Shown here piece by piece: positions 3,709 to 51,999 of a DNA stretch of 64,000 bases (position 1 is the stretch's first letter; every line of letters starts with the position of its first letter). The DNA is taken from positions 248,001-312,000 of IMG/VR virus record IMGVR_UViG_3300024259_002152, one strand, 5' to 3'. A program made the translations under genes and the position numbers. The notes below the pieces were generated by a model, which saw only the letters and a list, made by a program, of their open reading frames with translations, did not search any database and had not been told where the DNA came from.

Positions 3709-4734
3709 ATGTGCCTCACAAGAGAACAATTTAGAAATGGAGTATTTAATAGAGATAACAATCAATGTGTTATTTGCGGGGAATCTACGGGATTAGATGC
3801 CCACCACATAACAGAGAGAAGATTATGGGGACCATCTCAAGGATATTATTTGTCTAATGGTGCTACTTTATGTTCCAAACATCATATCGAGGCAGAACAA
3901 ACCATTCTTGGCTGTGAAGAAATTAGAAAAGCCGCAGGCATTAAAGAGATACTATTGCCAGAGCATTTATATGAAGAATATAATTACACCAAATGGGGGG
4001 ATATTGTTCTGCCAACTGGTATGAGACTAAAAGGAGAATTATTTTATGATGAATCTGTGCAAAAGATTTTAAAATCGGGAAATGTTTTAGATATTTATTC
4101 TGATTATGTGAAATATCCTAGGACAATGCATCTTCACTTTTCTTCTAAGGTTACAGAAGATGATAGAATTTTAGATGATGCTTCTTGTTTTGTCGGTAAA
4201 AGAATTATTGTAACAGAAAAGTTTGATGGAGAATGCTCAACTCTTTATGCTAATTATATGCATGCCAGATCTATTGATGGAGAGAATCATCCTTCTAGGA
4301 ATTGGTTGAAAGGTTTTCATAGTAAAATGGGATACAATATCCCTGAAGGATGGAGAGTATGCGGAGAAAATGTATATGCTAAACATACTATATATTATGA
4401 TAATTTAGATACTTATTTCTATGTTTTTTCTATATGGGATCAAAGGAATAATTGCTTGAGTTGGGACGATACTATAGAGTGGTCTCAACTCTTAGACCTT
4501 CAATTAGTTCCTGTCATATATGATGGGATTTGGGACGAAAAAATAGTCAAAGGGTTTTGTAATGACGATAAAAGAGAGGGTTTTGTTGTTAGGATAGCAG
4601 ATGGTTTTTCTTACGGAGAATTTAGAAAGTTTGTAGCTAAATATGTTAATCCTATATTTAAAGATAAATTGAACGAAGAAGATACTTATCATTGGAGATA
4701 TAGTGCTATGACACTTAATAGATTGGCAAAATGA
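3709..4734 (+). CDS. HNH-domain / ATP-dependent RNA ligase fusion
   Basis: N-term RD..CVICG..AHHI..NGATLC..HH (HNH-like); C-term KYPRT.HL, TEKFDG, EGFVVR, VAKYV nucleotidyltransferase motifs. Confidence 0.85.
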   Translation: MCLTREQFRNGVFNRDNNQCVICGESTGLDAHHITERRLWGPSQGYYLSNGATLCSKHHIEAEQTILGCEEIRKAAGIKEILLPEHLYEEYNYTKWGDIVLPTGMRLKGELFYDESVQKILKSGNVLDIYSDYVKYPRTMHLHFSSKVTEDDRILDDASCFVGKRIIVTEKFDGECSTLYANYMHARSIDGENHPSRNWLKGFHSKMGYNIPEGWRVCGENVYAKHTIYYDNLDTYFYVFSIWDQRNNCLSWDDTIEWSQLLDLQLVPVIYDGIWDEKIVKGFCNDDKREGFVVRIADGFSYGEFRKFVAKYVNPIFKDKLNEEDTYHWRYSAMTLNRLAK

Positions 4735-11788: not shown

Positions 11789-12369
11789 GCAAAATAAGAA
11801 GAATAAATTTGTTTTCTGGAGCAGGCGGAGGAAAATCCATCACAGCAACCAATATTCGTGCTCAGTTGGGCTTTAAGGGTTATGATATAGAACTAGTAGA
11901 TGAGGTGATAAAAGATTGGACCTATATCCCTAGAATACCCAAAGATTGTGATAGTTTTTATTTGCAAGCGTCTCAGATTCAAAAAGAAGACATTAGATTA
12001 AGAGCAGGAGTGGATCTTATAGTAAGTGATTCTCCTTTGTTTTTGCAATATTTTTATGCATGGCATTATAAAACTCCTTTGCAGATGGCTATGCTGTCAG
12101 CAAGTATCGAGTTTGACGTGAGATATACTCCGCTAAATATTTTTATTAATCGCGAAGATGAATTTTATAATGAAACAGGTAGATATGAAACCTTAGAAGA
12201 AGCAAAACATATCGACATAGAAATAAAAAGACTCATGAGTAGGAATGCGGTTGAGTATAAAGAATTTTCTTGTTTAAATCAAGATGGGATAATCTATTAT
12301 ATAATATCAAAAATAAAAGAAGCAGATGAGCGAACTAATGGCAAATGGGTAACAAGTGAAAAAACGTAA
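11785..12369 (+). CDS. P-loop NTPase, NadR/AAA_28-like kinase
   Basis: INLFSGAGGGKS, IVSDSPL, GRYET. Confidence 0.75.
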   Translation: MSKIRRINLFSGAGGGKSITATNIRAQLGFKGYDIELVDEVIKDWTYIPRIPKDCDSFYLQASQIQKEDIRLRAGVDLIVSDSPLFLQYFYAWHYKTPLQMAMLSASIEFDVRYTPLNIFINREDEFYNETGRYETLEEAKHIDIEIKRLMSRNAVEYKEFSCLNQDGIIYYIISKIKEADERTNGKWVTSEKT

Positions 12370-13511
12370 TGTCAAAAATAGATATAATAGATAGTGAAAA
12401 ATTAAGAAAACAATTTCTACTACTACATGGAGATGCAAAGGATGTTCTGAAAGATCTTCCTGAGAATTTTGTTCATACGGTAGTGACTAGTCCTCCCTAT
12501 TGGCAATTAAGAGATTATTTTGCTAATGATCAGTTAGGTCAAGAGAGAACTCCTGAAGAATATGTGAAAAACTTAGTAGATATATGTAAAGAGATAAAAA
12601 GAGTTTTGAGGAAAGACGGCACGTTTTGGCTTAACATAGGAGATAGTTATAATAATAATTCAGGGTTTGAAAGAACAACTGATTGGAAAAGAAAAGGACG
12701 GTCGGGAGGTTCTTCTGATAAGAAAGCGTTCAAACATTCTTCTATTAAAATAAAAGATTTAGTAGGTATGCCATGGCGTGTAGCTTTTGCTTTGCAAAAT
12801 GATGGATGGTTTCTACGTTGTGATATAATTTGGCAAAAAACTAATCCTATGCCTGATGGAGCAAAGGACAGACCAACCAGAGGACATGAATATATATTTT
12901 TACTAACTAAATCTTCTAAATATTTTTATGATTACTATAGGGTATTAGAGGATACAGAAGAACAGCCAGAACAGATTCAGGGATTTGGGGCAAATGAGCA
13001 ACATGGCACTTATAGAATGGATCAGAATAGGACTTTTGAACATTATGGTAAGAGGAATAAAAGGTCAGTATGGAAAACATCTGTATCTACTTTTAAAGGT
13101 AAACATTTTGCCACCTATCCATTTCAACTTATAGAGCCTTGTATTATGGCATCCACATCTGATAAAGGGTGTTGTGTAGAATGTGGCACTCCTTGGTTTC
13201 GTAATTTTGAGAAAGAAAAAAAACCATCAGATAACCAAAAAGGATATACTTTAGAGTTGGTAGATAAAGGATGGGAACAAGGATGTGAATGTAATACTAA
13301 TGAAGTTAAACCATGTATTGTTCTAGATCCTTTTAACGGGTCAGGAACTACAGGAAACGTAGCGTTTAAATATGATCAACATTATATAGGCGTAGATACT
13401 AATAAGGAATATTTAGAAATTGCTAGAAACAATATTATAAGTAGTAAAAGAAATACTGAAGAGAATATTGTTGAAGCATCAACATTGGAGAGTTTTTTAG
13501 ATGATAATTGA
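12369..13511 (+). CDS. DNA N4/N6 methyltransferase, beta class
   Basis: TSPPYW, HFATYP, DPFNGSGTT; Cys-rich insertion. Confidence 0.92.
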   Translation: MSKIDIIDSEKLRKQFLLLHGDAKDVLKDLPENFVHTVVTSPPYWQLRDYFANDQLGQERTPEEYVKNLVDICKEIKRVLRKDGTFWLNIGDSYNNNSGFERTTDWKRKGRSGGSSDKKAFKHSSIKIKDLVGMPWRVAFALQNDGWFLRCDIIWQKTNPMPDGAKDRPTRGHEYIFLLTKSSKYFYDYYRVLEDTEEQPEQIQGFGANEQHGTYRMDQNRTFEHYGKRNKRSVWKTSVSTFKGKHFATYPFQLIEPCIMASTSDKGCCVECGTPWFRNFEKEKKPSDNQKGYTLELVDKGWEQGCECNTNEVKPCIVLDPFNGSGTTGNVAFKYDQHYIGVDTNKEYLEIARNNIISSKRNTEENIVEASTLESFLDDN

Positions 13512-17713: not shown

Positions 17714-18142
17714 ATGAAAAAAACTATATATGTATTGTTGTGTGTTTTATGTATATTTTTTTTGTCATCATGTGCATTGTTTACGTCATCATATAATAGA
17801 AATGATAATTCATGTATTTTATCTGCCACGAATGTGGCAATTCATGATTTCGCAATTTATGAAAACGAGATATTAGATAAATGTGCGGAGCAAGGAAATA
17901 AAGATTGTAAAAAGGGAGACAAAATTGAAGAGTGGCTTTTATTTTTAGAATCGATAGAAAAATACTTTGAAGAAGGTAAGTTGGACACTATTAATACTAT
18001 TGTAAATAATATTATCAAAGATATGAAGAGATATGAGGTAGATAGTAAAATAGTTACAGATATTGAGAATATTAAAGTTGTTTTAGACTTAAAGTGTGTA
18101 GAAGGTATTAAAAAGAAAACTGTTCGTCATGCTGGAAGGTAG
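17714..18142 (+). CDS. putative lipoprotein
   Basis: MKK + hydrophobic stretch + LSSC lipobox. Confidence 0.7.
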   Translation: MKKTIYVLLCVLCIFFLSSCALFTSSYNRNDNSCILSATNVAIHDFAIYENEILDKCAEQGNKDCKKGDKIEEWLLFLESIEKYFEEGKLDTINTIVNNIIKDMKRYEVDSKIVTDIENIKVVLDLKCVEGIKKKTVRHAGR

Positions 18143-18686
18143 TGAAACAGTGGTGAAAAAAGCATTTACTCTAATTGAAATGATGGTAGTGATGTCTATT
18201 ATTAGTATGGTAGCTTCTGTGTATATGCCAACTCTTAATATTGCTCGACAACAGGCAGAATCAGTATTATGTCAGAATAATTTATCATTACGGGGCAGAA
18301 CAATAAGATCGGGTGTACAATTATCTGCAAATAATTGTCCTACTAGCGGAAAGAATTATGCTATTTTTTCTTTATCCGAAAATTTAGATAGATTGAGTTC
18401 AGAAGATGGCTTATTGTGTGATGCTGGAAATACTAGCACTGTTGAGCCGAGAATGCCATATAAAGACATTGCATATCAGAATGTTCATAATGGTATTGCT
18501 GGTTCTATGGATTATACTTTAACAGGTGGTACTAATATGTTATTAGCTGACTTTTCTGTTAAGGGAGGTAAAGGGGTATTACCCACTTATGTTGGTATTC
18601 AATACTATTACGGAGATAATACAGGTTTTATATTTTGTGCTGATTATCCAAATGTATGGCCAGATCCATGGTTCCAACCTAACTGA
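18129..18686 (+). CDS. prepilin-type N-terminal cleavage/methylation protein (DUF1559-like)
   Basis: KKAFTLIEMMVV...P.L..AR..A....CQNNL; H...GGTNMLLAD. Confidence 0.82.
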   Translation: MLEGSETVVKKAFTLIEMMVVMSIISMVASVYMPTLNIARQQAESVLCQNNLSLRGRTIRSGVQLSANNCPTSGKNYAIFSLSENLDRLSSEDGLLCDAGNTSTVEPRMPYKDIAYQNVHNGIAGSMDYTLTGGTNMLLADFSVKGGKGVLPTYVGIQYYYGDNTGFIFCADYPNVWPDPWFQPN

Positions 18687-18812: not shown

Positions 18813-19364
18813 ATGAATAAAACATACCTAACAGAGCCGCAGAGAAAACTGATAACAGATAATTATCGGTTATTAAGGCATTTTATAGGTCGATCAATTA
18901 AGAACAAAGTTGTTCCGAGATATCTAGAACATGAATTTATTAGTAAAATATTGCTTAAATTCTGTATTTCTGCCTTAAAGTTTGATGAAGAATTAGGATA
19001 TAAATTTTCTACTTATGCTTATAGGGGTTTTCAATTAGGTTTAAAGGATGTTCTATCTTATGAAAATACTAGATTTGGACAAATATGTTATTTAGAAGAT
19101 GTGGAGCAATATGAGATAGAATGTGAGAAAGTTGATGAACTAAGAGATGATTTTTTTTATGATTTTATTGATAATATAGATTTGGGTTCAAGAGATAAAT
19201 CTATTATGGAGGATTATTATTATGAGGGATTGTCATTTTCTAAGATAGGGCAGAAAAAGAATTTAACAGGGGAGGCAGTTCGATTGGTTGTTGATAGGTC
19301 TTTAAATAAAATTAGACATATGGTTCACAAAAGAAGATTAAATATGGAAGATTTTTATAAGTAG
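18813..19364 (+). CDS. RNA polymerase sigma factor (sigma70 family)
   Basis: Region 2 KFDEELGYKFSTYAY; region 4 EGLSFSKIG...LTGEAVR. Confidence 0.88.
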   Translation: MNKTYLTEPQRKLITDNYRLLRHFIGRSIKNKVVPRYLEHEFISKILLKFCISALKFDEELGYKFSTYAYRGFQLGLKDVLSYENTRFGQICYLEDVEQYEIECEKVDELRDDFFYDFIDNIDLGSRDKSIMEDYYYEGLSFSKIGQKKNLTGEAVRLVVDRSLNKIRHMVHKRRLNMEDFYK

Positions 19365-19371
19365 GAATAAT

Positions 19372-19947
19372 ATGATGAAGCAAAGGGTAGTTAAATCGGA
19401 GAAATTAACTAATAATAAATGGATTAATTTATTTAAGGTCCAATATATTAACTCTAAAGAGAAAGTATGTAATTGGGTTTTCGCGTCTCGAAAAAAAGAT
19501 CCTTTCACAGATAAAAAAATAGACGCGGTAGTTCTGGTTGTCACTGTTGATACTCCTAAAGGTCGAATGCTTGTAGTGATAAAAGAATACCGAGCACCTC
19601 TTGCAGATTATGAGTATGGTTTCCCTGCTGGTCTGATAGATCCAGGAATGACAATAGCAGAAACAGTTAAAAAAGAATTAAAGGAAGAAACAGGGCTAGA
19701 TTTAGTTAGGATTATAGGAGAGAGCGGTCCAGTTTATTCTTCTGCTGGATTGTCCGATGAAGCGGTTACTATGGTATTTGTTGAAGCAGAAGGAGAAATG
19801 AATACAGATCATCAAGAAGATACTGAAGATATAGAAGTATTCCTTTATGATATAAATGATATTAGTGATTTACTAACATCTGATAAAAAAATAGGAGCCA
19901 AAGCTTGGGGAGTTTTATACTATTACTCTCAGATTGGGAAAATATAA
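19372..19947 (+). CDS. NUDIX hydrolase (ADP-ribose pyrophosphatase-like)
   Basis: FPAGLIDPG...KELKEETGL, YSSAGLSDE, EDIEV. Confidence 0.88.
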   Translation: MMKQRVVKSEKLTNNKWINLFKVQYINSKEKVCNWVFASRKKDPFTDKKIDAVVLVVTVDTPKGRMLVVIKEYRAPLADYEYGFPAGLIDPGMTIAETVKKELKEETGLDLVRIIGESGPVYSSAGLSDEAVTMVFVEAEGEMNTDHQEDTEDIEVFLYDINDISDLLTSDKKIGAKAWGVLYYYSQIGKI

Positions 19948-19952
19948 ATATT

Positions 19953-20621
19953 ATGGTTGAAGGGCAAGAATCAAGTGAAACTAAATTTACTTTTGAAGAG
20001 GTAAGGAGTCATTTATACAAGCAAGCTATTAAAGTGCATAAACGATTTTACGGAAGATATGAAATTAATGAGTTGGTTAATGAGGTGTGGGTCAAAGGAA
20101 GTATTCAAGAATTAGAAAATATAAAATATGTTTCTGCGAGAGCATATTATGATATGATTGATTATATTAGAGTGATAGAAGGTAAATGTATGACATATAA
20201 AGGTATGTCATATCGTGCTCCGAGGGCAAAAAATAATATGCATTCTAGCACAATAGATATTGGCACGCAGCAGCTTGATATTTTCTATGGATATGGAAGT
20301 CATGATCGTGATTTTTTTGATCGTCAAGAAGATACTAAGAGAAGCTATATTGATTATGTTGATGATAAAGACGAAGTAGAATATATATTATCTCATCTTT
20401 CTGAACAGCATTTAGATTTTATAAAAAAGCATTTCTTCGAAGGGTTAACTTTAAAAGAAATTGCTAAACAATTTCAAATAGCAAAACGAACAGCATGGGG
20501 TAGGCGTCATAAAATTTTAAAGAATATAAGAATGGAGCGTATGTCAATATTTCTAAGAGCAAAATATTTAAGAGAATATAGAAAAAGAAAGAGAGATTCA
20601 AATGCCTACCTATCAATATAA
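19953..20621 (+). CDS. divergent sigma factor-like protein
   Basis: RAYYDMIDYIR (region 2-like); FEGLTLKEIA HTH (region 4). Confidence 0.72.
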   Translation: MVEGQESSETKFTFEEVRSHLYKQAIKVHKRFYGRYEINELVNEVWVKGSIQELENIKYVSARAYYDMIDYIRVIEGKCMTYKGMSYRAPRAKNNMHSSTIDIGTQQLDIFYGYGSHDRDFFDRQEDTKRSYIDYVDDKDEVEYILSHLSEQHLDFIKKHFFEGLTLKEIAKQFQIAKRTAWGRRHKILKNIRMERMSIFLRAKYLREYRKRKRDSNAYLSI

Positions 20622-20868
20622 ATGCTCAGCTTGTGATTATGAGTTTGAACTTATGCAAAGCATAATAGATTCTGCTAAAAAGAAGTGTCCAACGTGTGGC
20701 AAAATGAAACTTAAAAGATTAATAGGTGCGGGTTCAGCAGTTATTTTTAAAGGTTCAGGTTTTCATTGCAATGATTATAAATCTGACAATTATAAACAAA
20801 GCGTTGAAAAGAAACCTGTTTTTAGCAATAAAACAATTAAAAAAGGTCCTGCCAAAACACAAATCTAA
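20602..20868 (+). CDS. FmdB-family zinc-ribbon protein
   Basis: MPTYQYKCSAC..FE..QSI, CPTCG, FKGSGF..NDY. Confidence 0.9.
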   Translation: MPTYQYKCSACDYEFELMQSIIDSAKKKCPTCGKMKLKRLIGAGSAVIFKGSGFHCNDYKSDNYKQSVEKKPVFSNKTIKKGPAKTQI

Positions 20869-20961: not shown

Positions 20962-20989
20962 TTGAAAGTGAAAGTGCTAATTATATAAT
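20962..20989 (+). promoter_or_regulatory. sigma70-type promoter, GTGAAA class
   Basis: TTGAAA-GTGAAAGTGCTAATTA-TATAAT. Confidence 0.75.
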
Positions 20990-21043
20990 TGTAGTCAGTT
21001 GTTAGAGTTTCAATTTATTACTTTTTTTATGGAGATCCGAAAG

Positions 21044-21718
21044 ATGAAGAACTGGAAGAAAATTACACTAGCGGTTATTGTTGCTGTGGCATTTATGTTT
21101 GCCTCAGTCGGAGAGTTGGCGGCCAGGGGGGGTAGAAGTGGTGGTGGAGGGGGTTTCAGAAGTAGTGGTAGGTCAAGATCTACAACAAGGTCAACAAGAT
21201 CAACAAGATCAACACGAAAAGCACCATCGAAAAAGTCGGCCAGTAAGGCCAGAACAAAAGCTGCTCCAAAAAGGACAGCAGCACAACAAAAATCTTATGA
21301 AGCAGCTAAGAAGAATGGCACAGCTTTTAAAAGTAAAGCAGACGCCACTAAGGCATTCAAAACAAAGAATGCAAAACAATATACTTCTAAGTATGCTGCT
21401 AAGCCTGCAACACGACCTTCTCATATCCCTCAGACAACATCGGTAAATGGTAAAAATGTTAATGTAACATATAATGTTTCACATGGAGGGTATGGATATA
21501 TGAATCCTATGGGTACATGGATGATGTATGATGCTATGACTGATGCTATTATGCTATCTGCCCTTATGAGTCGCAACAACTATCATTATGATACTATTGC
21601 TCCAGTAGGTCATAATGGAGTTCATCATCGCACTTCTGCTTTTACCTACCTTGGATTGGCACTCGTTGCTGTGGTTGTTATTCTTATCTTTGTTGCAATT
21701 TTCAAACGTGGAGTATGA
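21044..21718 (+). CDS. exported/membrane protein with Gly/Arg/Ser-rich basic region
   Basis: Signal peptide, RGGRSGGGGG and STR repeats (9-bp TCAACAAGA units), C-terminal TM helix. Confidence 0.75.
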   Translation: MKNWKKITLAVIVAVAFMFASVGELAARGGRSGGGGGFRSSGRSRSTTRSTRSTRSTRKAPSKKSASKARTKAAPKRTAAQQKSYEAAKKNGTAFKSKADATKAFKTKNAKQYTSKYAAKPATRPSHIPQTTSVNGKNVNVTYNVSHGGYGYMNPMGTWMMYDAMTDAIMLSALMSRNNYHYDTIAPVGHNGVHHRTSAFTYLGLALVAVVVILIFVAIFKRGV

Positions 21719-21721
21719 TTA

Positions 21722-22435
21722 ATGAGAACCACAGATAAAACTACATTAGCTTATTGGGAACAAATTCAGAGAGGAGATTTAATTCAACTCTCTGACGAAC
21801 AGACTATTGCTGATCTGATGGAAGATGGTTGTCAAAATATAGAGCATGGTGCAGATTTTGAGGTAACAAGAATACGGAAGATATCTGCTCAACAAGGTTC
21901 TGCTCGTTGGCTTATATTTGATATATCTCTTTCTAGTTTTCAGTGGGTTGTAGTTGTAAAATCTGTAGGTGTGGGTCTTGATGTCAAAGTTTGTTATACT
22001 CCTGATGATTTTAATGATGGTAGTCGTCAGGATATGATGGATAACGATTGTCTCTGGCTTTTTGAAAATCGTGACAATATCGATAGTTCTACACTCTCCG
22101 AACTTACTTTTGCTTCTTGTATTGAAGAAGGAGAAGATACCATTTATAGTACAAATGGGTCAGAGTTTGGAGAGTGTAGAGAATATGATGAAAAGTCATT
22201 TGCTACCATTACTGAATATCTTACAGAATCTGATGTAGAAAATCCTGAGTTGATAATTCTTGAGTTTAATAATATTGAAGAATGGTCTAATTCAGAAGAA
22301 CAAGAAGATGAAGATGATTTTGAAGAGATATCGGTAGAACATTCATCTGGTGTCACGATAGACGAAGAAAATAGTTTTATTACTTTTCTTCAGGGGTGTA
22401 GAGTGGATCTGAATGATATCAAATTGTTAAAGTAA
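21722..22435 (+). CDS. hypothetical acidic protein (possibly DUF4178/YjfK-like)
   Basis: Acidic beta-rich sequence; position in yjfI/pspA cluster. Confidence 0.55.
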   Translation: MRTTDKTTLAYWEQIQRGDLIQLSDEQTIADLMEDGCQNIEHGADFEVTRIRKISAQQGSARWLIFDISLSSFQWVVVVKSVGVGLDVKVCYTPDDFNDGSRQDMMDNDCLWLFENRDNIDSSTLSELTFASCIEEGEDTIYSTNGSEFGECREYDEKSFATITEYLTESDVENPELIILEFNNIEEWSNSEEQEDEDDFEEISVEHSSGVTIDEENSFITFLQGCRVDLNDIKLLK

Positions 22436-22482
22436 AGTGTTTTAGGATAATATTAAAAATTAATAGTTTTAGGAGTAATGTT

Positions 22483-22935
22483 GTGAATGATATTAAAAGT
22501 ATAGTAGATGTAGAGCGTATTCTTGCAGAACAGGGATATAAGGTTCAAATGAATGAAAACAGTGTTACTATTTCTGTGGGAAGTGATGCTGCTCCTTTTC
22601 CATGTCTTATTCTGATGGATGAGACTGACCTAACTGTTGTTTGTGAGGTTATGACATATGGGCAATTGATGGAGAGAATTGCTCCTGATATGAGAGAAGA
22701 TTTTTACATGACTCTCTTGGACATGAACTCTCAGACTAAGCCATACTCTTTTTCTATTCTGAGTGATATAGATGGGGAGGGAGATGAGAGAGATCAATGG
22801 CCGCTCGTGTTGATTAATAGCATTCCCGTTGGGGATATTTCTCAAGACGAATTACTTGCGGCTATGAGAGGTTTGAGTGCGGCTTTGCTAACAGCGAAGA
22901 ATATATTCGATGTAAGCCTTGTCGAATCTTTATGA
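22483..22935 (+). CDS. YjfI (DUF2170)-like protein
   Basis: LLDMN...PYSFSI segment, size, adjacency to pspA. Confidence 0.55.
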   Translation: MNDIKSIVDVERILAEQGYKVQMNENSVTISVGSDAAPFPCLILMDETDLTVVCEVMTYGQLMERIAPDMREDFYMTLLDMNSQTKPYSFSILSDIDGEGDERDQWPLVLINSIPVGDISQDELLAAMRGLSAALLTAKNIFDVSLVESL

Positions 22936-23011
22936 GATAGAGAAGATAATAAGTTAGTATTTAACTATTGTCTCAATTGCTAAACAATAATAAATTTTAA
23001 GTTAGGAGTAT

Positions 23012-23689
23012 ATGATTATGGCAAGTTTTTGGAAGATGTTCAAAAATAGTGTTAGAGAGAAGAAGGATAAAGCTGCTGAAAAAATGGCAGATCCGATTCG
23101 GGATGGCAAATTTGCTATCGAAGATTCTAAAGGAAAATTGGCAGATATACAAGGTAAGATTGCTACATATTCTGCACAGATCAAGAAGAATCAACGTGAT
23201 TATGATGCCGAGGTGGCAGAGGTTAGGAAATGGGGGAATCTTGCTAAAAAAGCAGCAGAAGCGAGTAATGAAGAAGACGTGCGTAAATGCATTACTCTTA
23301 AAACTCAGGCTCAGCAACGTGCCGATAATCTTAAGAAAATGATCACTCAAGATGAAGGCATGCTTAACAGTATGAAGAGTCAGTGGCAGACAAAGAACAA
23401 TCAAGTTAGTCAGGCTGAAAGTAATCATTCTCAGCTAGCAGTTCGCAAACAAATGGCCGAAGCGAGAAAAGAATTTGCCAAATCTTCTCAAGGTCTCGAC
23501 TCGGACAGTTGTTTTTCAGAATTGGACAAGCTTCAACAGTCGGTAGAAGCTGATGAGTGCGAGGCAGAGGCATATGAAGAAATGGCACCTACGAATGACC
23601 TCGAAGATATGTCAAGTAAGTATGGAGCTTCAGGCGATTCGGCTGTGGATGATGAAGTAGCCAAAATGATGGCTAATGCTAAAAAGTAG
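23012..23689 (+). CDS. pspA: PspA/IM30 family protein
   Basis: N-terminal amphipathic helix, ADP, long coiled coil, W..LAKKA....NE. Confidence 0.88.
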   Translation: MIMASFWKMFKNSVREKKDKAAEKMADPIRDGKFAIEDSKGKLADIQGKIATYSAQIKKNQRDYDAEVAEVRKWGNLAKKAAEASNEEDVRKCITLKTQAQQRADNLKKMITQDEGMLNSMKSQWQTKNNQVSQAESNHSQLAVRKQMAEARKEFAKSSQGLDSDSCFSELDKLQQSVEADECEAEAYEEMAPTNDLEDMSSKYGASGDSAVDDEVAKMMANAKK

Positions 23690-23714
23690 TTAATAAACTT
23701 TTAGCTATGATTGG

Positions 23715-23770
23715 AACTTCCTATGATGTATTGTGGATTGTTGTTCACCTACTCATAGGAAGTTTTTCTT
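23715..23770 (+). terminator. long hairpin / terminator between pspA and channel gene
   Basis: AACTTCCTATGA (23715-26) / TCATAGGAAGTT (23753-64) + T run. Confidence 0.55.
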
Positions 23771-23781
23771 TAAAGAGGATA

Positions 23782-24867
23782 ATGATGAAAAATATATTAA
23801 TATTTTTAGTTTTGCTTATGATCTGCAAATTCTCTTACTCGGAGAGCATATATAAAACCACTCAAATTTATGTCTCTGATATGAAGCCCTGTGTTATTGT
23901 CGAGGAGTCAGAAGATAGTCATATTCCTGTTTCTATTTCTGGTTTTGAAATAGATTTAGGAAATGAAGTTGCAAAAGACCTCATAGCACAAGACATAATT
24001 AAAGATTGGGAATTTGTTCCTATATCATGGCATAAACTAGAAGAGAATATAAAAAACGGCAATGCAGATATGGCTTGTGCTGGATTTACGATACGTTCTA
24101 AAAGAATGGACTGGGCAGATTTCTCTGTGCCTACTATGAATTCTGGTTTAGGAATAATGGTATTAAAAAATCCAGAAAAGAATTCTATATTATGTAAATT
24201 AAAAGTTCTCTATGAAGCCCTTATAATGCCCATAACCTTATTCGGATTGTTTTTGCTAGCTTTTTCTCATTTTATATGGTTGGCAGAAAAGAAAAATCCT
24301 GGGATTAATGACCACTATTTTCCAGGGATTTTTGAGTCAATATATTTTTGTATAGTTACATGTTCTACAGTTGGTTATGGAGATTATACTCCTAAAAGAT
24401 GGACAACCAAAATAGTAACAATAGCACTTATATTTTGTGGTATTATTGCTTTTTGTAATTTCACAGCTTTACTTTCTGCCGATTATACTACTGAGAAAAT
24501 TACAGGAGATATTAGATCTCCAGAGGATCTAAAAGGTAAGATTGTCCTAACTCAAAAAGGGACAACAAGTGATGATTATGCAAAAGGGTTAGGGGCTTCT
24601 AAAGTTAAGAAAGTTGATAATATAGATACCGCTTGCGACTATTTATTGCTTGGAAGAGGGGATGCTGTAGTATTTGATCATCCAGTTCTACTTAATTATG
24701 TAAAAGAGAATCCCGATAAGGTTGAATTAGTAGATGGTATTTTCGATGAACAATATTATGGGTTTGTGTTTCCTAAAGGAAGTCCTTTGAAAAGAGCAGT
24801 TGATAAATCCATCCTTAAATTATATGAAGATGGGACTTATAAACGACTTTATCAAAAGTGGTTCTAA
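23782..24867 (+). CDS. GluR0-like ligand-gated K+ channel
   Basis: Signal peptide; SGFEIDL and TIRSKR..WADFS.P (S1); TM-pore TVGYGD-TM; S2 with YGFVFPKGSPL; AGAGGA RBS. Confidence 0.9.
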   Translation: MMKNILIFLVLLMICKFSYSESIYKTTQIYVSDMKPCVIVEESEDSHIPVSISGFEIDLGNEVAKDLIAQDIIKDWEFVPISWHKLEENIKNGNADMACAGFTIRSKRMDWADFSVPTMNSGLGIMVLKNPEKNSILCKLKVLYEALIMPITLFGLFLLAFSHFIWLAEKKNPGINDHYFPGIFESIYFCIVTCSTVGYGDYTPKRWTTKIVTIALIFCGIIAFCNFTALLSADYTTEKITGDIRSPEDLKGKIVLTQKGTTSDDYAKGLGASKVKKVDNIDTACDYLLLGRGDAVVFDHPVLLNYVKENPDKVELVDGIFDEQYYGFVFPKGSPLKRAVDKSILKLYEDGTYKRLYQKWF

Positions 24868-24874
24868 AAAGCAT

Positions 24875-24902
24875 TTGAAAGTGAAAGTATTTGCCCTATA
24901 AT
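24875..24902 (+). promoter_or_regulatory. sigma70-type promoter, GTGAAA class
   Basis: TTGAAA-GTGAAAGTATTTGCCC-TATAAT. Confidence 0.75.
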
Positions 24903-24952
24903 GTATAATTAGGTGTCGTAGTTGGCTCCTATGTATATATTATAGGGTATTT

Positions 24953-26824: not shown

Positions 26825-27415
26825 ATGCAAAAGCTAGATTTTGTGAAAGAAATCCTTTTTGACGAAGAAACTGTTACGAAACGTATAAATGAAATTCGTG
26901 GTGAAATTTTATCTTATTACAAAGAAATAAAAAAACCTATATATGTTTTTTCTGTTTTGAAAGGTGGTAGATATTTCTCAAATCTTTTATTTCCCTCAGG
27001 TTTACCACAGAATAGAAGATGGATAATGCGTTATATTTCCGCGAGCAGTTATCGTAATAATGAGAAATTACCTAACAATGAAATAAAAATAGATCTGATG
27101 GGCGTTGGAATTAAGTGTTTATGGGGTGCCCATGCGTTAATTATCGATGATATATATGATACAGGTAATACTCTTAATGAGATTATTGCTCAATTTTGGA
27201 GGAATGGAGCAACTGTCAATAGTGTGGTGTTAATCAAAAGGACAGGACATCATAAGTTTGTTATTCCAATGTTATCATATGGTTTTGAAGTAACAAGTAA
27301 AGATTATTTAGTTGGTTGCGGTTTGGACTATAATGGTGGTTATCGCCAGATACCCTACATAGCCAGTATTAAGGAGATAAAAGATGCCGATAGAATTCCC
27401 AATAACAGTCAATAA
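26825..27415 (+). CDS. hpt: hypoxanthine-guanine phosphoribosyltransferase
   Basis: VLKGG, ASSY, LIIDDIYDTGNT, VGCGLDY...YR. Confidence 0.9.
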   Translation: MQKLDFVKEILFDEETVTKRINEIRGEILSYYKEIKKPIYVFSVLKGGRYFSNLLFPSGLPQNRRWIMRYISASSYRNNEKLPNNEIKIDLMGVGIKCLWGAHALIIDDIYDTGNTLNEIIAQFWRNGATVNSVVLIKRTGHHKFVIPMLSYGFEVTSKDYLVGCGLDYNGGYRQIPYIASIKEIKDADRIPNNSQ

Positions 27416-35386: not shown

Positions 35387-37114
35387 ATGGCTAAGTATGC
35401 AAATCATGTAGCGAATCCAAAGACTTCACAAACAAAGAAGGCAAAGAGTACTCAGGTAAAAGGCAGAGCGGGTGGGTATGTTTTCAAGGTCGATGACTGG
35501 ACAAGGCTGAACCGTTTCCTAATCATTGGTAGTGAGAAGGGTTCTTACTATGCCTCTGATCGTGAGTTGACTATGGAGAATTACGACTGCATCCTGAATT
35601 GTTTGAAGTTGGATGCAAAGCGTACTGTCGATACTATTGTAGAGATTAGTGATCAGGGTCGTGCCATTAAGAATGATCCAGCTATCTTTGCATTGGCGGT
35701 ATGCAGTGTTCATGGCGACGAAAAGACCAAAGCATATGCTAATCTAGTTATGCCTAAGGTTGCTCGTTTCTCTACTGCTTTCTTCTCATGGGTTGATTCT
35801 ATCAACACATTGAAGGAAGGTCGTAAGGGTAAGGGTCTGTTAAGAGCCATTGGAAGATGGTATACAGAAAAAGATGCTGTGAAGTTGGCATACCAGATTT
35901 GTAAGTACCCAGGTCGTTCAATAGGTGGCCAAAGATGGACTCACGGGGACGTTTTGCGTCTTGCAAGGATCTCTCCATCTAAGGATGGCAGACCTTCTAG
36001 AAATGGTAGGGCACTAACGATTCCTTCAGAGGACCATGCTACTGTTTTTCATTACGCAACACATGGTATCACAACTGCTGCGACTCTTGCTCAAAGAGAA
36101 AAAGATGCTAAAGCTACTGGTAAGACCCAGGAAGCTCCTGGTATCTCTGTAAAGCAGTATAAAGCTTTGAAGGATAGTAAGCTTAAGTATATCTGGGCAC
36201 ATGAGCAATGTAAGGTTGCGACTAAGAATAGTGAAGTAGTTTCATTAATTAAAAACTACAATCTTACAAGAGAATCTGTCCCTCCACAGTTTAGAAATGA
36301 ATTGTTGGTGCAAAAGGCCCTGCTGCCAGGGATGCCTATGACTGCTTTGATCCGAAATTTGGGAAGCATGACTTCTTCAGGTCTTTTGAAGCCATTGGCT
36401 GATGAGACTTCATTAGTAATCGACAAGATTACAAATGAGGAAATACTGAAGAAGAGTCGTATTCATCCTATGACACTTATGCTGGCATTGAAGACTTACA
36501 GCAGTGGTAGTGGCATGAGGACTACTTGGAAGCCTGTAGGAGCTATCAAAGATGCTATGGAAGATGCTTTCTACAAAGCGTTCAACTATGTTGAGCCAAC
36601 TGGAAAGAAATTTCTTTACGGTATTGATGTTAGTGGTTCTATGGGTTGGTCAGAAGTTAATGGTATGCAAGCACGCGAAGCTGCCGCAGTCGTAGCAATG
36701 ACGTGTGCAAGAACCGAGAAGAACTATGATCTTATGGCTTTTGGTCATGCATTCGTGCCACTTAACATTACCGCTAAGGATAGTTTGGATACTGTGGTTA
36801 GACGAACTGCTAATTTGAATTTTGGCGGAACTGATTGTGCATTACCTATGAAGTATGCAATGAAAAATGGTCTGGATGTTGATGTGTTTGTTGTTCTAAC
36901 GGACAGCGAGACATGGTTTGGTGATATTCATCCATTTGAAGCATTGAAGCAGTATCGCAAGAAGTTCAATAAGAACGCCAAGCTTGCCGTGTTGGCATTT
37001 ACAAGCAATGGCTTTACAATAGCCGACCCAAGCGATGCGGGAATGATGGATATTGTTGGTTTGGATTCTAATGTGCCGAAGGTATTATCTGAATTCGCGG
37101 CAAATAGACTTTAA
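35387..37114 (+). CDS. Ro60/TROVE-domain RNA-binding protein (Rsr-like)
   Basis: AGGYVF..DDW.RL.RFL..GSE.G.YY, MPMTALIRNLG.MT, RIHP, vWA MIDAS DVSGSM, GGTDCALPM, TDSETW. Confidence 0.95.
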   Translation: MAKYANHVANPKTSQTKKAKSTQVKGRAGGYVFKVDDWTRLNRFLIIGSEKGSYYASDRELTMENYDCILNCLKLDAKRTVDTIVEISDQGRAIKNDPAIFALAVCSVHGDEKTKAYANLVMPKVARFSTAFFSWVDSINTLKEGRKGKGLLRAIGRWYTEKDAVKLAYQICKYPGRSIGGQRWTHGDVLRLARISPSKDGRPSRNGRALTIPSEDHATVFHYATHGITTAATLAQREKDAKATGKTQEAPGISVKQYKALKDSKLKYIWAHEQCKVATKNSEVVSLIKNYNLTRESVPPQFRNELLVQKALLPGMPMTALIRNLGSMTSSGLLKPLADETSLVIDKITNEEILKKSRIHPMTLMLALKTYSSGSGMRTTWKPVGAIKDAMEDAFYKAFNYVEPTGKKFLYGIDVSGSMGWSEVNGMQAREAAAVVAMTCARTEKNYDLMAFGHAFVPLNITAKDSLDTVVRRTANLNFGGTDCALPMKYAMKNGLDVDVFVVLTDSETWFGDIHPFEALKQYRKKFNKNAKLAVLAFTSNGFTIADPSDAGMMDIVGLDSNVPKVLSEFAANRL

Positions 37115-38280: not shown

Positions 38281-39492
38281 ATGGAACATATGATGAAAGA
38301 GTTATTAAATATTGGAATAGAACATCCTGCTCGTGTAATGGAATTTACCGAGTTGACTCAAGGATTGTTCGCGGAAGTTGCTGATGGTAATGTAAGCGTT
38401 ACTTATCATCCAGAATTTCCACATCTTGCTCTGTTTAAATATACTCAAGATTGCGTTACGGAGAGAAAATGGAACAAATTTTCTCTTATGGCTAGAGGTC
38501 TAATATTAGATCTTCAAGATAAAAAAGTTGTTGCAGTTAGTTTTACAAAATTTTTCAACTACGGAGAAATTGAAGAAGGCTCTCGATCTATCATAGAGCC
38601 AGATTTTCTTGTTACAGAGAAAATGGACGGCTCATTAGGCATAATGTACTTTTTTGCTGATCAATTCAGGTTCGCGACAGCAGGTTCATTTATATCGGAA
38701 CAGGCTCAATGGGCAGATCAATGGGCAAAGGAGCATATAGCCATTGATAAATTAGATAAGACAAGCACTTATCTGTTTGAAATAATTTATCATGAGAATA
38801 AAATTGTGGTTCATTACAATTTTGAAGGACTGGTTTTATTAAGCATATTTAATTCTTATGGATTAGAGTGTAATTATGAGCAAATTAAGTGGGAAGCGTC
38901 ATATATGGGAACTCGGTATGTGAAGCAATATAACTTTGAAGATATGGAAACCATAGTCAATACTGCTAAAACTTTAGATAGCAATAATGAGGGTTATGTC
39001 ATACGCTTCAAAAGCGGAATACGTTTAAAAATTAAAGGCGATGAGTATGTCCGCGTGCATAGACTAATTTCTCAAGTCACACCTCTTGCTATATGGGAAT
39101 CTATGGTTAATGGTGACGACTTAGAAGGGATAAAAAAAGATTTGCCAGAAGAGATGGAAAAAGACTTTGATACTATAAGAGCAATTTTTAATGCAAAATT
39201 AGAAGCTTTTATAAAAGAGGTAGAAAGTCTTTGTGAGCGAACTAAATCTATGTCAGATAAGGAATTAGGCATATATATGCAACAGGGTCTTGTGGCATTC
39301 GGAAACACAGTTTTTAAAGATTCTTTTAAATTTATTTTCCATATGAGAAAGAATAAATTCTATGAATCTCTTAACGATGTGCCATCGTATGGTCGTAGAA
39401 GAATTTTTGCTGCATTTAGACCAAAAGCTAATATATTGGAAGGATATAAGCCTTCGTCAGTAGTTAATAGATTCGCCAATATGGACAACTAA
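38281..39492 (+). CDS. T4 Rnl1-like RNA ligase
   Basis: ARGLI, KFFN, TEKMDGS, FEII, EGYV, LKIK..EY. Confidence 0.9.
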   Translation: MEHMMKELLNIGIEHPARVMEFTELTQGLFAEVADGNVSVTYHPEFPHLALFKYTQDCVTERKWNKFSLMARGLILDLQDKKVVAVSFTKFFNYGEIEEGSRSIIEPDFLVTEKMDGSLGIMYFFADQFRFATAGSFISEQAQWADQWAKEHIAIDKLDKTSTYLFEIIYHENKIVVHYNFEGLVLLSIFNSYGLECNYEQIKWEASYMGTRYVKQYNFEDMETIVNTAKTLDSNNEGYVIRFKSGIRLKIKGDEYVRVHRLISQVTPLAIWESMVNGDDLEGIKKDLPEEMEKDFDTIRAIFNAKLEAFIKEVESLCERTKSMSDKELGIYMQQGLVAFGNTVFKDSFKFIFHMRKNKFYESLNDVPSYGRRRIFAAFRPKANILEGYKPSSVVNRFANMDN

Positions 39493-39545
39493 CTAAATCA
39501 CTTTCCAAAAAACTGATTTGTAAGTGAAAGTGATTTAGTTATAAT
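39490..39545 (+). promoter_or_regulatory. GTGAAA-class promoter embedded in 16-bp inverted repeat
   Basis: TAACTAAATCACTTTC / GAAAGTGATTTAGTTA; TTGTAA-N16-TATAAT. Confidence 0.65.
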
Positions 39546-47125: not shown

Positions 47126-48193
47126 ATGAAAATAGAAGATGTTGGTAATAGCTCTTTTAAATGTAAATTATTGTTAGGGAATGCTAAAAATGTTTTGCAA
47201 GATATCCCTGAAAATACTTTTCATATGGCAGTGACAAGTCCTCCTTATTGGGACCAAAGAGACTATAACGTAGATGGTCAATTAGGTCAAGAAAATAGCC
47301 CTGAAGAGTATGTAGAGAATTTAGTCGCTATCTGTAGAGAAGTAAGAAGAGTTATTAGGGAAGATGGCACTTTTTGGCTTAATATCGGAGACGGTTATTG
47401 TAAGAAAACTATTAAATCTTCAAATCTTAAACAAAAAGATTTAGTAGGTATACCGTGGATGGTTGCGTTTGCTCTTAGGCAAGATGGGTGGTATTTACGA
47501 AGTGATATTATTTGGAAAAAAACAAATCCTATGCCCGAGAGTGTAAGAACAAGACCTTCTAAATCTTATGAACATTTATTTCTTTTCTCCAAATCGGAAA
47601 ATTATTTCTATGATGCAGAAGCTATAGCAGAGCCACAGAAAGAGATTTCTGTTAAAAGAGCTTATTCTAAAAATAGAGTAGAAAAGAGAAAAGATTATCA
47701 AAATGATAATTATGCTATTAGTGGTAAGTCCCAAGATAAAACATATAGAAAGATGAGAAAAATATTAGACGAGATGGGAGAAGATGAGGTCATCACGTGT
47801 AATAAAAAAGATGTTTGGGAAATAGCTACTGCCGACAATAAGGTTAAACATTTTGCCATCTATCCAAGAGAATTAGTTAAGCCTTGCATTTTGGCAGGTA
47901 GTTCTTCGAAAGGTTGTTGTCCAAAATGCCAATCTCCATGGATTATGGAAAAGGGAAAAAATTGGGAACCAAGTTGTAATTGTGGAGAAACAGAAGTAAA
48001 AGAATGTATTGTTCTAGATCCTTTCAATGGGTCAGGAACTACAGGAATGATATGTAGAGAATATGGTAGAAAGTATGTAGGAATAGATATTAGTGAGGAA
48101 TATTTATCTTATGCAAGAGATGCTTTGATAGGAGAGAGGAGAGCAGAAATGGCAGAAGAAGTAGATTCTATTCAACAACTTAAAGTTTTGTAA
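47126..48193 (+). CDS. DNA N4/N6 methyltransferase, beta class (paralog of 12369-13511)
   Basis: TSPPYW, HFAIYP, DPFNGSGTT. Confidence 0.92.
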   Translation: MKIEDVGNSSFKCKLLLGNAKNVLQDIPENTFHMAVTSPPYWDQRDYNVDGQLGQENSPEEYVENLVAICREVRRVIREDGTFWLNIGDGYCKKTIKSSNLKQKDLVGIPWMVAFALRQDGWYLRSDIIWKKTNPMPESVRTRPSKSYEHLFLFSKSENYFYDAEAIAEPQKEISVKRAYSKNRVEKRKDYQNDNYAISGKSQDKTYRKMRKILDEMGEDEVITCNKKDVWEIATADNKVKHFAIYPRELVKPCILAGSSSKGCCPKCQSPWIMEKGKNWEPSCNCGETEVKECIVLDPFNGSGTTGMICREYGRKYVGIDISEEYLSYARDALIGERRAEMAEEVDSIQQLKVL

Positions 48194-50811: not shown

Positions 50812-51999
50812 ATGGAGCTTACTGAAAAGTTAAAGAAAGAAGCTGTAAGGGGACTTATTAAAGAGATATGCAAAGAAGATGGCTCTATACAAAATGTCCA
50901 TACTCCTTATTCTCTTTGTGAAGATATAATAGAAAAGGCAGTTGATTATATTGAAGATTTAGAGAATAAAAGTATTCTTGTTATGTTTAACCTTGAATTT
51001 ATTGATAGTCTTATTGACTTGGGTATAGATCCTAAGAATATAACTTTTATGTCAGATTCAGAACAAAGAAGAGGTTTGGCAGAAAATTTTTATGAAGTTG
51101 AAGCTATTGAATTTAAATTATCAGATTTAAATGGAGATAATATAATGGGTAAACAATTCGACCATGTGATTGGTAATCCTCCTTATCATAAAAAAGGAAA
51201 TGAAAAAGACACAAAGACGCAAGCGATATGGCCATCATTTGTTGATTTGTCTTTACAGTATTGTAAGGATGATGGGCATTTGTGTTTTGTGCATCCATCA
51301 GGGTGGAGAGGAAATGGAATGTATAAAAAAATAGGTAGGTTGATGAAATCAAAGCAGATAGAATATTTAGAAATTCATGATGAAAAAGATGGGATGAAAG
51401 TATTCGATGCTGAGACAAGATATGATTGGTATGTTTTGCAAAATAAATATAATGAAGATGTTACCGAAATTAAAGACCAAATAGGGAAAATCTCTAAAAT
51501 AAATATAAGAGACATGGAGATAATTCCTAATTTTAACATTATAGATGTTCAGAATCTCATTGCTAAAGATGGGGAGGAAAAGGTTACCGTTCTGTCAGAT
51601 TCTACATATCATACTCAATCTGGTGTTAAAAAAGGGTTTATGAGCGAAACAGAAACAAAGACACATAAATATCCGTGTGTGTATGTGGTTAACTCTGTGG
51701 GAGAAATGCAATTATGGTATTCTTCTGTAAAAAAAGGACATTTTGGGACAACCAAGCTTATATTTTCTAATGGCAGAATATCTTCTGCTAATTATTTTGT
51801 AGATCAAAATGGAGAATACGGTTTGACTCAATTTTCTTATGGGATTATAGACAGTATCGAGAATTTGAGAGATATATATAAAGCAATGAGAACTAAAGAA
51901 TTTAAAAATTTAATGGAGGCATGTTCGATAGGAATGCTTACTATTAATAAAGATGTTTTAAAAACATTCCGTAAAGATTTTTGGAAGGAGTTTGTATAA
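50812..51999 (+). CDS. Eco57I-like N6-adenine methyltransferase domain + target recognition region
   Basis: FDHVIGNPPY, W..FV, GHLCFVHPSGW; no clear FxGxG motif. Confidence 0.8.
   Translation: MELTEKLKKEAVRGLIKEICKEDGSIQNVHTPYSLCEDIIEKAVDYIEDLENKSILVMFNLEFIDSLIDLGIDPKNITFMSDSEQRRGLAENFYEVEAIEFKLSDLNGDNIMGKQFDHVIGNPPYHKKGNEKDTKTQAIWPSFVDLSLQYCKDDGHLCFVHPSGWRGNGMYKKIGRLMKSKQIEYLEIHDEKDGMKVFDAETRYDWYVLQNKYNEDVTEIKDQIGKISKINIRDMEIIPNFNIIDVQNLIAKDGEEKVTVLSDSTYHTQSGVKKGFMSETETKTHKYPCVYVVNSVGEMQLWYSSVKKGHFGTTKLIFSNGRISSANYFVDQNGEYGLTQFSYGIIDSIENLRDIYKAMRTKEFKNLMEACSIGMLTINKDVLKTFRKDFWKEFV

Follow-up and report, generated by a model that had tools for sequence, protein, structure and literature searches.

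The stretch of DNA analysed here, which we call the window, is 64,000 nucleotides (nt) long and comprises bases 248001-312000 of the 350,866-bp IMG/VR virus record IMGVR_UViG_3300024259_002152. On its plus strand lies a gene for a predicted GluR0-type ligand-gated potassium channel (23782..24867; positions are those of the window unless another locus is named). The gene stands directly behind a pspA gene, and a long stem-loop with a run of T residues occupies the short junction between the two.

In the list of open reading frames (ORFs) the channel appears as a frame of 386 amino acids (aa) at 23707..24867 (+), and the first 25 codons of this frame cross an inverted repeat. The channel orthologues begin at MKK directly behind a ribosome-binding site. 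Hence, judged from the sequence, the real start is the ATG at 23782 (or 23785), which yields a protein of 361 aa with the stop codon TAA at 24865-24867. An earlier note on this DNA had let the feature begin at 23715, but this position belongs to the left arm of the repeat and not to the gene.

The protein starts with a predicted signal peptide (aa 1-22, 23782-23847, +). Hydropathy and a reading of the sequence show a hydrophobic stretch at aa 1-20, Lys3 and a small-residue site, SYS-E, which is AxA-E in the orthologues. The segments that follow, all on the plus strand, are the S1 lobe (aa 23-135, 23848-24186), the membrane helix M1 (aa 136-168, 24187-24285), the pore helix with the filter (aa 179-201, 24316-24384), the membrane helix M2 (aa 207-237, 24400-24492) and the S2 lobe (aa 238-361, 24493-24864), with which the protein ends. 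The K+ selectivity filter TVGYGD (aa 196-201, 24367-24384) was read from the sequence and the alignment. M1 and M2, found by hydropathy and DSSP, are the only long hydrophobic helices (aa 136-168 and 207-237); there is no amino-terminal domain and no transmembrane helix past S2. The Pfam domain SBP_bac_3 (E 6.8e-23) is split in two around Ion_trans_2 (aa 181-231, E 2.3e-13), and the Pfam families Lig_chan-Glu_bd and Lig_chan match as well. The order S1, transmembrane helix, TVGYGD pore, transmembrane helix, S2, which the earlier note had proposed behind a signal peptide, is borne out by the domain order, the K+ filter and the two transmembrane helices.

Structural comparisons place the protein among glutamate-receptor channels. 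Its best solved sequence relative is the ligand-binding core of Nostoc GluR0 (2pyy; PDB search, E 7.7e-30); GlnH-type binding proteins and AMPA receptors come next. An AlphaFold2 model with 113 homologues as input reaches a predicted local distance difference test (pLDDT) of 92.3 and a predicted template-modelling score (pTM) of 0.79. The top Foldseek matches of this model are chains of AMPA receptors that span the ligand-binding and transmembrane domains (E 1e-20).

The residues expected to bind a ligand and to conduct K+ are conserved. In the alignment of the 113 homologues G54, R108, T196, V197, G198, G200 and D299 are invariant. Position 103 (T103) is T or S in all 113 sequences. Three further positions are kept in 110 sequences each: T261 as T or S, F55 as F or Y, and Y199 as Y, with F in the other three; D201 is unchanged in 112. 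TVGYGD itself is present in 116 of the 120 channel matches. G101, T103, R108 and D299 align with G68, T70, R75 and D157 of GlnBP, which we take to be among the residues that hold the alpha-carboxylate and alpha-amino groups of the ligand. R108 and D299 are presumably equivalent to R485 and E705 of GluA2. The earlier note had suggested a structure prediction of the ligand pocket as a check. The predicted pocket is intact, with the ligand-contact residues R108 and D299 unchanged in every homologue, and by alignment and model the pore appears intact too. At aa 60, within the S1 lobe, the motif IDLW reads IDLG; the closest relatives keep the Trp.

The pore domain is also predicted to assemble. For four copies of aa 132-242, ESMFold2 yields a tetramer with an ipSAE of 0.74, compared to 0.00 for the best of three controls. 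Among proteins of solved structure, 21 of 30 same-chain pairs reach the mark set for ipSAE, compared to 0 of 23 single chains. The tetramer runs share at least 94% of their contacts, which involve the filter, the pore helix and M2, and the partner pLDDT is at least 75. Such a prediction expresses likeness to K+ channels and falls short of proof of assembly. The channel gene appears to be under purifying selection, with a ratio of nonsynonymous to synonymous substitution rates (dN/dS) of ~0.13 against its 77% identical orthologue in locus L086, a rough value because dS is ~1. L-numbers denote the homologue-bearing loci that we compared; L086 (298 kb), L002 (548 kb), L088 (186 kb) and L167 (114 kb) will recur below.

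Alternatively, the protein could be a non-conducting, membrane-tethered amino-acid sensor or binding protein. The source annotations of the homologues do read 'ABC-type amino acid transport substrate-binding protein', and 'transporter substrate-binding protein' is the name that such a gene receives in a 2026 preprint. However, a protein without conductance does not sit well with filter residues that are invariant or nearly so, with purifying selection, or with a pore-domain tetramer that is confidently predicted and held together by contacts at the filter. Furthermore, the surrounding genes that were checked include neither an ABC permease nor an ABC ATPase. We consider a non-conducting sensor very improbable. 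The in silico tests (domains, filter, helices, ligand contacts and the predicted tetrameric pore) all agree with the GluR0 identity that the earlier note had assigned.

The junction in front of the channel gene contains two perfect arms of 12 nt (23715-23726 and 23753-23764) with 26 nt between them. RNAfold predicts a stem-loop with a small inner stem at 23713..23766 (+), with a folding energy (dG) of -25.2 kcal/mol and a z-score of -5.55; none of 200 shuffled sequences was as stable. The T-run TTTTTCTTT (23763..23771, +) overlaps and follows the 3' arm. Next comes AAGAGGA (23773..23779, +), which we read as the ribosome-binding site. Hence the 12-bp inverted repeat and the T run that had been noticed just before the ribosome-binding site are confirmed. 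The stem-loop begins 23 nt past the pspA stop and ends 15 nt before the channel ATG. Among the 15 hairpin-plus-T-run elements with a dG of at most -12 that a scan of the plus strand of the window returned, eight of them intergenic by the gene models, the junction hairpin is the strongest. Rfam has no family at the hairpin; its two weak chance matches both lie inside coding sequence.

The earlier note missed the gene upstream, and the stem-loop is first of all the terminator-like element of this gene. The gene (23012..23689, +) encodes a PspA/IM30-family protein of 225 aa and ends with the stop codon TAG at 23687-23689. PF04012 matches with E 2.1e-17 and 63.9 bits, compared to a cut-off of 33.9, while the NCBIfam matches to PspA and LiaH stay under their cut-offs. 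The protein is 82% identical to its orthologue in L086, with a dN/dS of 0.06. The TAG is a true stop, and the orthologues end at the same place with TAA. We considered an alternative genetic code and rejected it as unneeded: the five-gene unit described below is open under table 11. A stem-loop with a U-run 3' of the pspA stop has the layout of an intrinsic terminator and would make this a candidate site for 3' ends in vivo.

The channel is the last of five genes on the plus strand: ORF239, which encodes a membrane protein, ORF237, ORF150, pspA and the channel gene. A promoter-like motif, TTGAAAGTGAAAGT-N8-TATAAT, precedes ORF239 as an exact copy (20962..20989, +) and is the proposed start of the unit. 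The next copy (24875..24902, +) lies 8 nt past the channel stop and marks the end of the unit. A pattern scan found no copy between 20962 and 24875. Because copies of the motif bracket the five genes and none lies inside, we propose that the five genes form one unit with the channel at its end.

The motif occurs more often than expected. The pattern TTGAAA-N16-TATAAT, with at most one mismatch, has 12 matches in the window where 3.4 are expected. Exact plus-strand copies of the motif begin at 1474, 18754, 20962, 24875 and 33546, and a copy with one mismatch at 39518. L086, L002 and L003 have the copy behind the channel in the corresponding position, and in L002 the motif also precedes the ORF239 homologue (L086:5094, L002:2182 and 6092, L003:5107). 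Standing before gene blocks, the motif looks like this phage group's own early promoter or a promoter of the host-sigma70 type, and it could be used to map transcription units.

A stable stem-loop with a U-run is found at the pspA-channel junction of seven loci: the window, L086, L002, L003, L088, L167 and L168. Its dG is -25.2 kcal/mol in the window, -19.7 in L086, -25.5 in L003, -29.5 in L088, -22.0 in L167 and -18.4 in L168; in L002 the hairpin was seen in the fold. The window and L086 have similar stem sequences; those of the other loci show no relation. Judged from these comparisons, it is the structure of the hairpin and not its sequence that is kept at the junction. Since hairpins of unrelated sequence, each with a U-run, occupy the same junction in the relatives, the element is more than a product of chance. 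A bacterial locus looks different: in L169 (4519-5001) the spacer between pspA and the channel gene is 482 nt long and contains several very long, near-perfect REP-like hairpins, compared to the compact single hairpin of the phages.

What could such an element do? The stem is only 15 nt away from the ATG, so transcripts of the channel gene must pass through the hairpin. It may be a partial (leaky) intrinsic terminator, a stabiliser of the 3' end of the pspA message, or both. Either action would lead to more PspA, a scaffold-forming protein needed in bulk, than channel, a potentially harmful protein needed in few copies. It is plausible that the hairpin limits the dosage of the channel. This interpretation is strengthened because the hairpin is kept in distant relatives and because there is no promoter motif from 20962 to 24875. 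Most likely the protein is a functional K+ channel gated by amino acids, and it would be produced in smaller amounts than PspA.

The hairpin could also leave channel dosage unaffected. It would then be a complete terminator of pspA, or a stabiliser of the 5' untranslated region, and the channel gene would have its own, unrecognised promoter, perhaps one served by a phage sigma factor, ahead of the hairpin or inside it. Two proteins with sigma-70 region 4 are encoded just upstream of the unit, so promoters unlike the TTGAAAGTGAAAGT motif must exist. Furthermore, other hairpin-plus-T-run elements (38252 and 53043) also stand 21-28 nt before a start codon, which suggests that the genes are closely spaced in general. 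Yet the 15-nt gap forces any such promoter upstream, and transcripts starting there would still cross the hairpin and the U-run. An element without effect on the channel also leaves it unexplained why the hairpin is kept, with its sequence replaced, in seven loci whose channels are 35-77% identical. In four phages, moreover, a strong motif that belongs to the following gene stands immediately behind the channel stop, which fits a channel gene at the tail of the upstream unit. We consider a separate promoter with unaffected dosage unlikely, and prefer the hairpin as a limit on the channel.

The block of five genes is not peculiar to the window. It occurs in at least eight other loci, which include huge-phage contigs and a bacterial genome bin. 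The whole block was found with tblastn in L086, L002, L003, L088, L167, L168 and L169, with channel identities from 77% down to 35%, and in L170 by matching gene lengths and Pfam pattern. A hidden Markov model (HMM) of phage PspA matches within ~3.5 kb upstream in eight of the nine IMG/VR loci with a full-length channel. In the ninth, L093, an ORF239 homologue lies directly upstream of the channel instead.

A linkage to PspA that is specific to phages would be a tempting conclusion, but we had to reject it since the pairing is also found in cellular settings (L169/L170 and L172). L169 lies in a genome of ~6 Mb (bacterial genome bin G001). In L169 and L170 the order is DUF350, two further genes, YbjN-like, PspA and channel, followed by a TPR/CHAT protein; DUF350 is present in the related loci L168-L170. 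In L172 PspA, a protein of 76 aa and the channel stand beside DNA pol III delta', iPGM and RRF. The cellular homologue loci L005, L166, L171 and L173 have no PspA, and the HMM search found PspA nearby in 0 of 80 loci from GTDB species genomes, among the matches listed. Because the PspA-channel pairing exists in bacterial genomes too, the channel is no viral invention: PspA and channel form a module of bacteria that is found in huge phages as well.

In a quick, unrooted maximum-likelihood tree, a branch with an approximate likelihood-ratio support (SH-aLRT) of 91 separates all ten viral rows from the 30 GTDB rows. The viral rows share their side with metagenomic rows that bear no label, some of which come from cellular settings, so this is not a purely viral clade. 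Most rows of the tree are of undocumented origin, and it supports no direction of transfer for the channel. Among 50,697 records of deposited phages, tblastn returned no full-length channel homologue. Its three partial matches reach no further than the C-terminal part (aa 212-361) and leave out S1 and the pore.

The record that bears the channel is that of a marine huge phage. This identity follows from a tRNA cluster, a strand bias and matches to phage families. The record has 31 tRNA genes in a single cluster, carries 349 of its 400 ORFs (ORFs of at least 100 aa) on the plus strand, and has a G+C content of 33%. The phage-family matches are strong (phrog_8638, 1.7e-128; phrog_13226, 2.9e-125; phage DNA polymerase, 2.5e-130), and the window holds RNA ligases, several DNA methyltransferases and a helicase. 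All 24 sequencing runs that contain DNA of the window are seawater or marine metagenomes. The segment 22900-25100, channel sequence included, is identical in contigs of four further seawater runs.

If the contig were cellular or mis-binned, the channel would be an ordinary bacterial GluR0. The Pfam models Terminase_6N, Terminase_6C and tail sheath indeed match nothing across the 351-kb record (73% complete), and the PspA-channel operon is also present in bacterial genome bins. That terminase and sheath matches are missing is little surprise when the huge phage is divergent and the record only part of its genome. A cellular origin would also have to account for a place among the IMG/VR virus records with a CheckV completeness of 73%, for the tRNA cluster, the strand bias and the phage-family matches, and for relatives that sit on IMG/VR contigs of up to 548 kb. 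Hence a cellular contig is an explanation to which we give hardly any credence, and we treat the record as that of a phage.

PspA-family proteins stabilise and remodel the inner membrane. Together with its YbjN/CesT-like partner, the product of ORF150, the phage PspA would keep the inner membrane of the host sealed during a long infection. The signal peptide of the channel would export the two-lobed clamshell of S1 and S2 to the periplasm. There the clamshell would bind a free L-amino acid, with R108 at the alpha-carboxylate, D299 at the alpha-amino group and Thr103 and Thr261/262 as further contacts. Closure of the clamshell would pull on M1 and M2 and open the TVGYGD pore. With amino acids outside, the channel would then give K+ a path that helps the cell to regain or adjust its K+ content, its turgor and its membrane potential. 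The GluR0 of Synechocystis has K+-channel activity, complements K+-uptake-deficient E. coli and has an inverted topology, and it affects cell volume after KCl stress (PMC13099474). The arrangement suggests that the phage manages the membrane and the potassium balance of its host.

Our preferred reading is therefore a functional, tetrameric, K+-selective GluR0-type channel that is last in a PspA unit, limited by the junction hairpin and used to maintain membrane and K+ balance. We assign it a probability of roughly 0.6. Several points weigh against it. The top binding-protein family in NCBIfam is GlnH, far under its cut-off, and names no ligand. At aa 60 (23959-23961) the window protein has Gly where 96 of the 113 homologues have Trp. 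The tetramer score may stem from solved K+ channels that the model has memorised, and the dN/dS of the channel is rough because dS is ~1. The stem is AT-rich and its loop is 26 nt long, which is atypical of a strong intrinsic terminator, and a consensus terminator scan did not list the junction hairpin. Finally, the proposed physiological role is drawn only from the gene neighbours and one cyanobacterial study.

The same channel could instead act against the cell or against rival phages. Amino acids outside, for example those set free by lysed neighbours, would open it and shift membrane potential and turgor; the outcome could be superinfection exclusion or the timing of lysis, in parallel to the depolarising role proposed for Kcv of chloroviruses. 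All evidence on the channel fits this antagonistic role equally well. Since the ligand-binding domain faces out (a topology taken from Synechocystis GluR0, PMC13099474), the signal must be extracellular, and PspA could shield the cell from the phage's own channel. However, the pairing also stands in bacterial chromosomes (L169/L170 and L172), where a role against competitors makes less sense, and a K+ channel clamps the potential near the potassium equilibrium potential E_K rather than collapsing it. We doubt the antagonistic role and retain membrane and K+ maintenance as the preferred one.

A more far-reaching idea is a portable 'membrane-state controller' carried by huge phages, in which PspA and the YbjN/CesT-like partner would seal and remodel the inner membrane of the host, while the channel would read amino acids outside, for example glutamate from lysed neighbours. 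We regard this as speculative and improbable as it stands. Its further step seems a similarly long shot: the amino-acid signal would change potential and turgor and so tune the length or outcome of infection, with the hairpin as a conserved set-point for the ratio of PspA to channel. If true, the controller would be a viral device for chemically gated electrical signalling.

How does the phage channel compare to known systems? With the GluR0 proteins of Synechocystis PCC 6803 (slr1257) and Nostoc punctiforme (2pyy) it shares the layout S1-M1-P-M2-S2, here behind a putative signal peptide, the TXVGYG filter, two transmembrane helices without an amino-terminal domain or a third transmembrane helix, and the Arg/Asp contacts. 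It is only ~26% identical to the cyanobacterial GluR0 homologues L013 and L020 and lies on another branch of the tree. Unlike the cyanobacterial channels, it is borne by a huge phage and placed inside a PspA operon.

The Kcv-type channels of algal viruses are likewise virus-encoded K+ channels with a canonical filter. The Kcv channels, which come from eukaryotic viruses, chloroviruses among them, are bare pores of less than 100 aa (PMC12332018), and the viral K+ channels characterised so far are all bare pores of algal viruses. This agrees with the statement in the earlier note that characterised viral K+ channels are minimal and lack a ligand-binding domain. The protein described here differs in its length of 361 aa, its split extracellular ligand-binding domain, its inverted pore topology and its bacteriophage origin. 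It thus falls outside the Kcv class, whose members consist of a pore only, under ~125 aa, with no sensor. In GluATCV* the ligand-binding domain of an AMPA receptor was fused to the viral K+ pore of ATCV-1 (PMC6385376). GluATCV* and the phage channel both couple a clamshell to a minimal K+ pore with two transmembrane helices in a viral context. GluATCV* is engineered and synthetic, whereas the phage channel is natural, of bacterial GluR0 descent and under selection.

Two studies describe related gene neighbourhoods. Ravi et al. (2024) reported CesT/Tir-PspA operons of the YjfI-YjfJ type, one group of which has a K+ channel (PMC11237479). As in these operons, a YbjN/CesT-like gene lies directly upstream of a PspA-family gene in the window, and a K+ channel belongs to the operon. 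The channel of the operons described by Ravi et al. senses an intracellular ligand, whereas the phage channel has an extracellular amino-acid clamshell and is phage-borne. The window has the PspA gene and the upstream CesT/Tir-like gene of this operon type. The companions of the polyamine group, with genes for an ATP-grasp ligase, DUF1190, DUF2491 and DUF350 (YjfL family), were not found in the five-gene unit of the window or in the unit preceding it.

According to Yuan and Chen, 184 huge phages have PspA, in most cases with membrane proteins as neighbours (bioRxiv 10.64898/2026.10.24.761521), and the window likewise has a phage PspA that adjoins membrane proteins. In the text of their preprint 'potassium', 'glutamate' and 'GluR' each occur 0 times; the gene was noticed and not called a channel. 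The section on these neighbourhoods mentions neither the five-gene block nor the junction hairpin.

GluR0-type channels have been known since 1999. What is new is the viral setting of a known protein family, and neither the conserved operon nor the junction hairpin was found in the literature searched. A survey from 2010 found the combination of a glutamate-binding domain and a K+ filter only in bacteria (PMC2950845), and the literature searched holds no description of a GluR0 in a phage or of a potassium channel in a jumbo phage. Within these searches, a natural, ligand-gated, GluR0-type phage channel would be the first virus-encoded channel with a sensor domain. In phages and in some bacteria the channel has PspA and the YbjN/CesT-like protein as fixed partners, which suggests that membrane repair of the ESCRT-III-like kind and K+ flux are functionally linked. 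With only 361 aa and a confident model, the phage protein might in addition be a compact template to study or engineer the gating of ionotropic glutamate receptors. Interest is tempered by the facts that the family is well known, that the module is also bacterial and that a preprint has already noted the gene beside phage PspA.

The other genes of the unit are less easily assigned. ORF239 (20999..21718, +) has an N-terminal signal or anchor, a basic, Ser/Arg-rich stretch of low complexity, a conserved C-terminal domain and a C-terminal transmembrane helix. Its real start is probably the ATG at 21044 (MKNWKK). ORF239 has homologues ahead of the channel gene in L086, L002, L003, L088, L090, L092, L093 and L167-L169. 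Searches of Pfam (at relaxed thresholds), NCBIfam, PHROGs and Atlas gave no reliable family. ORF237 (21722..22435, +) encodes an acidic protein conserved within the block. It has no reliable match in Pfam, NCBIfam or PHROGs, and Atlas gives DUF4178 as a weak lead (template-modelling (TM) score 0.40).

ORF150 (22483..22935, +), directly upstream of pspA, resembles YbjN, CesT-Tir and YjfI (DUF2170). Its Atlas structure matches are the clusters YbjN, CesT_Tir_1 and YjfI/DUF2170, with TM scores of 0.72-0.82 and a feature score of 0.91. The Pfam match of CesT_Tir_1 to the ORF150 family is weak (two of five orthologues, best E 0.055).

Behind the channel, an imperfect inverted repeat of 20 nt (24894..24947, +; 85% complementary) overlaps the -10 element of the motif copy. 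It ends 5 nt before the ATG of the next gene and could be a terminator of the channel gene or an operator. In the unit that precedes ORF239, the two sigma-70 region 4 proteins (18813-19364 and 19905-20621) flank a NUDIX hydrolase (19372-19947), and a Zn-ribbon protein (20602-20868) follows. The order helix-turn-helix, NUDIX, Zn-ribbon is the same in L003. The sigma-70 region 4 proteins are possible phage sigma factors.

One of the seawater runs, X2, has an 8.3-kb contig that matches pspA at 23058-23197 with 23 differences and four gaps. The contig skips 24395-24859, most of the S2 half of the channel, and has 460 other letters instead. A diverged relative of the window phage lives in the same water.

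A gut origin of the phage, from the group of Lak phages, was suggested by a megablast match of 380 bp at 71% identity. We rejected it, as all 24 runs are from seawater or marine metagenomes. What resembles Prevotella Lak phages is confined to a brief, conserved part of a methyltransferase gene (12369-13511) and is not diagnostic of the phage. This gene is the sole stretch with such DNA similarity (71%, 380 bp), and it is the first of three DNA methyltransferase genes within 40 kb (12369-13511, 47126-48193 and 50812-51999).

The strand asymmetry of the window is very strong, with a GC skew above 0 in all 2-kb bins from 1 to 64000. The phage also has an RNA-repair and tRNA toolkit, located at 3709-4734, 35387-37114 and 38281-39492 of the window and at G000:C1:232035-234548 and 327905-338016 of the record. 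It consists of two RNA ligase-like genes, an RNA-binding protein (phrog_850), a tRNA nucleotidyltransferase and the 31 tRNA genes, which span one 10-kb cluster and include one with an odd two-base anticodon call.

Two further genes deserve mention. At 18129-18686 a phage gene encodes a protein of 185 aa with a prokaryotic N-terminal methylation motif, a signal like that of type IV pilins. At 26825-27415, 2 kb 3' of the channel, lies a gene for a protein with a phosphoribosyltransferase domain (PF00156, 6.8e-08), which may be an auxiliary gene for nucleotide salvage.

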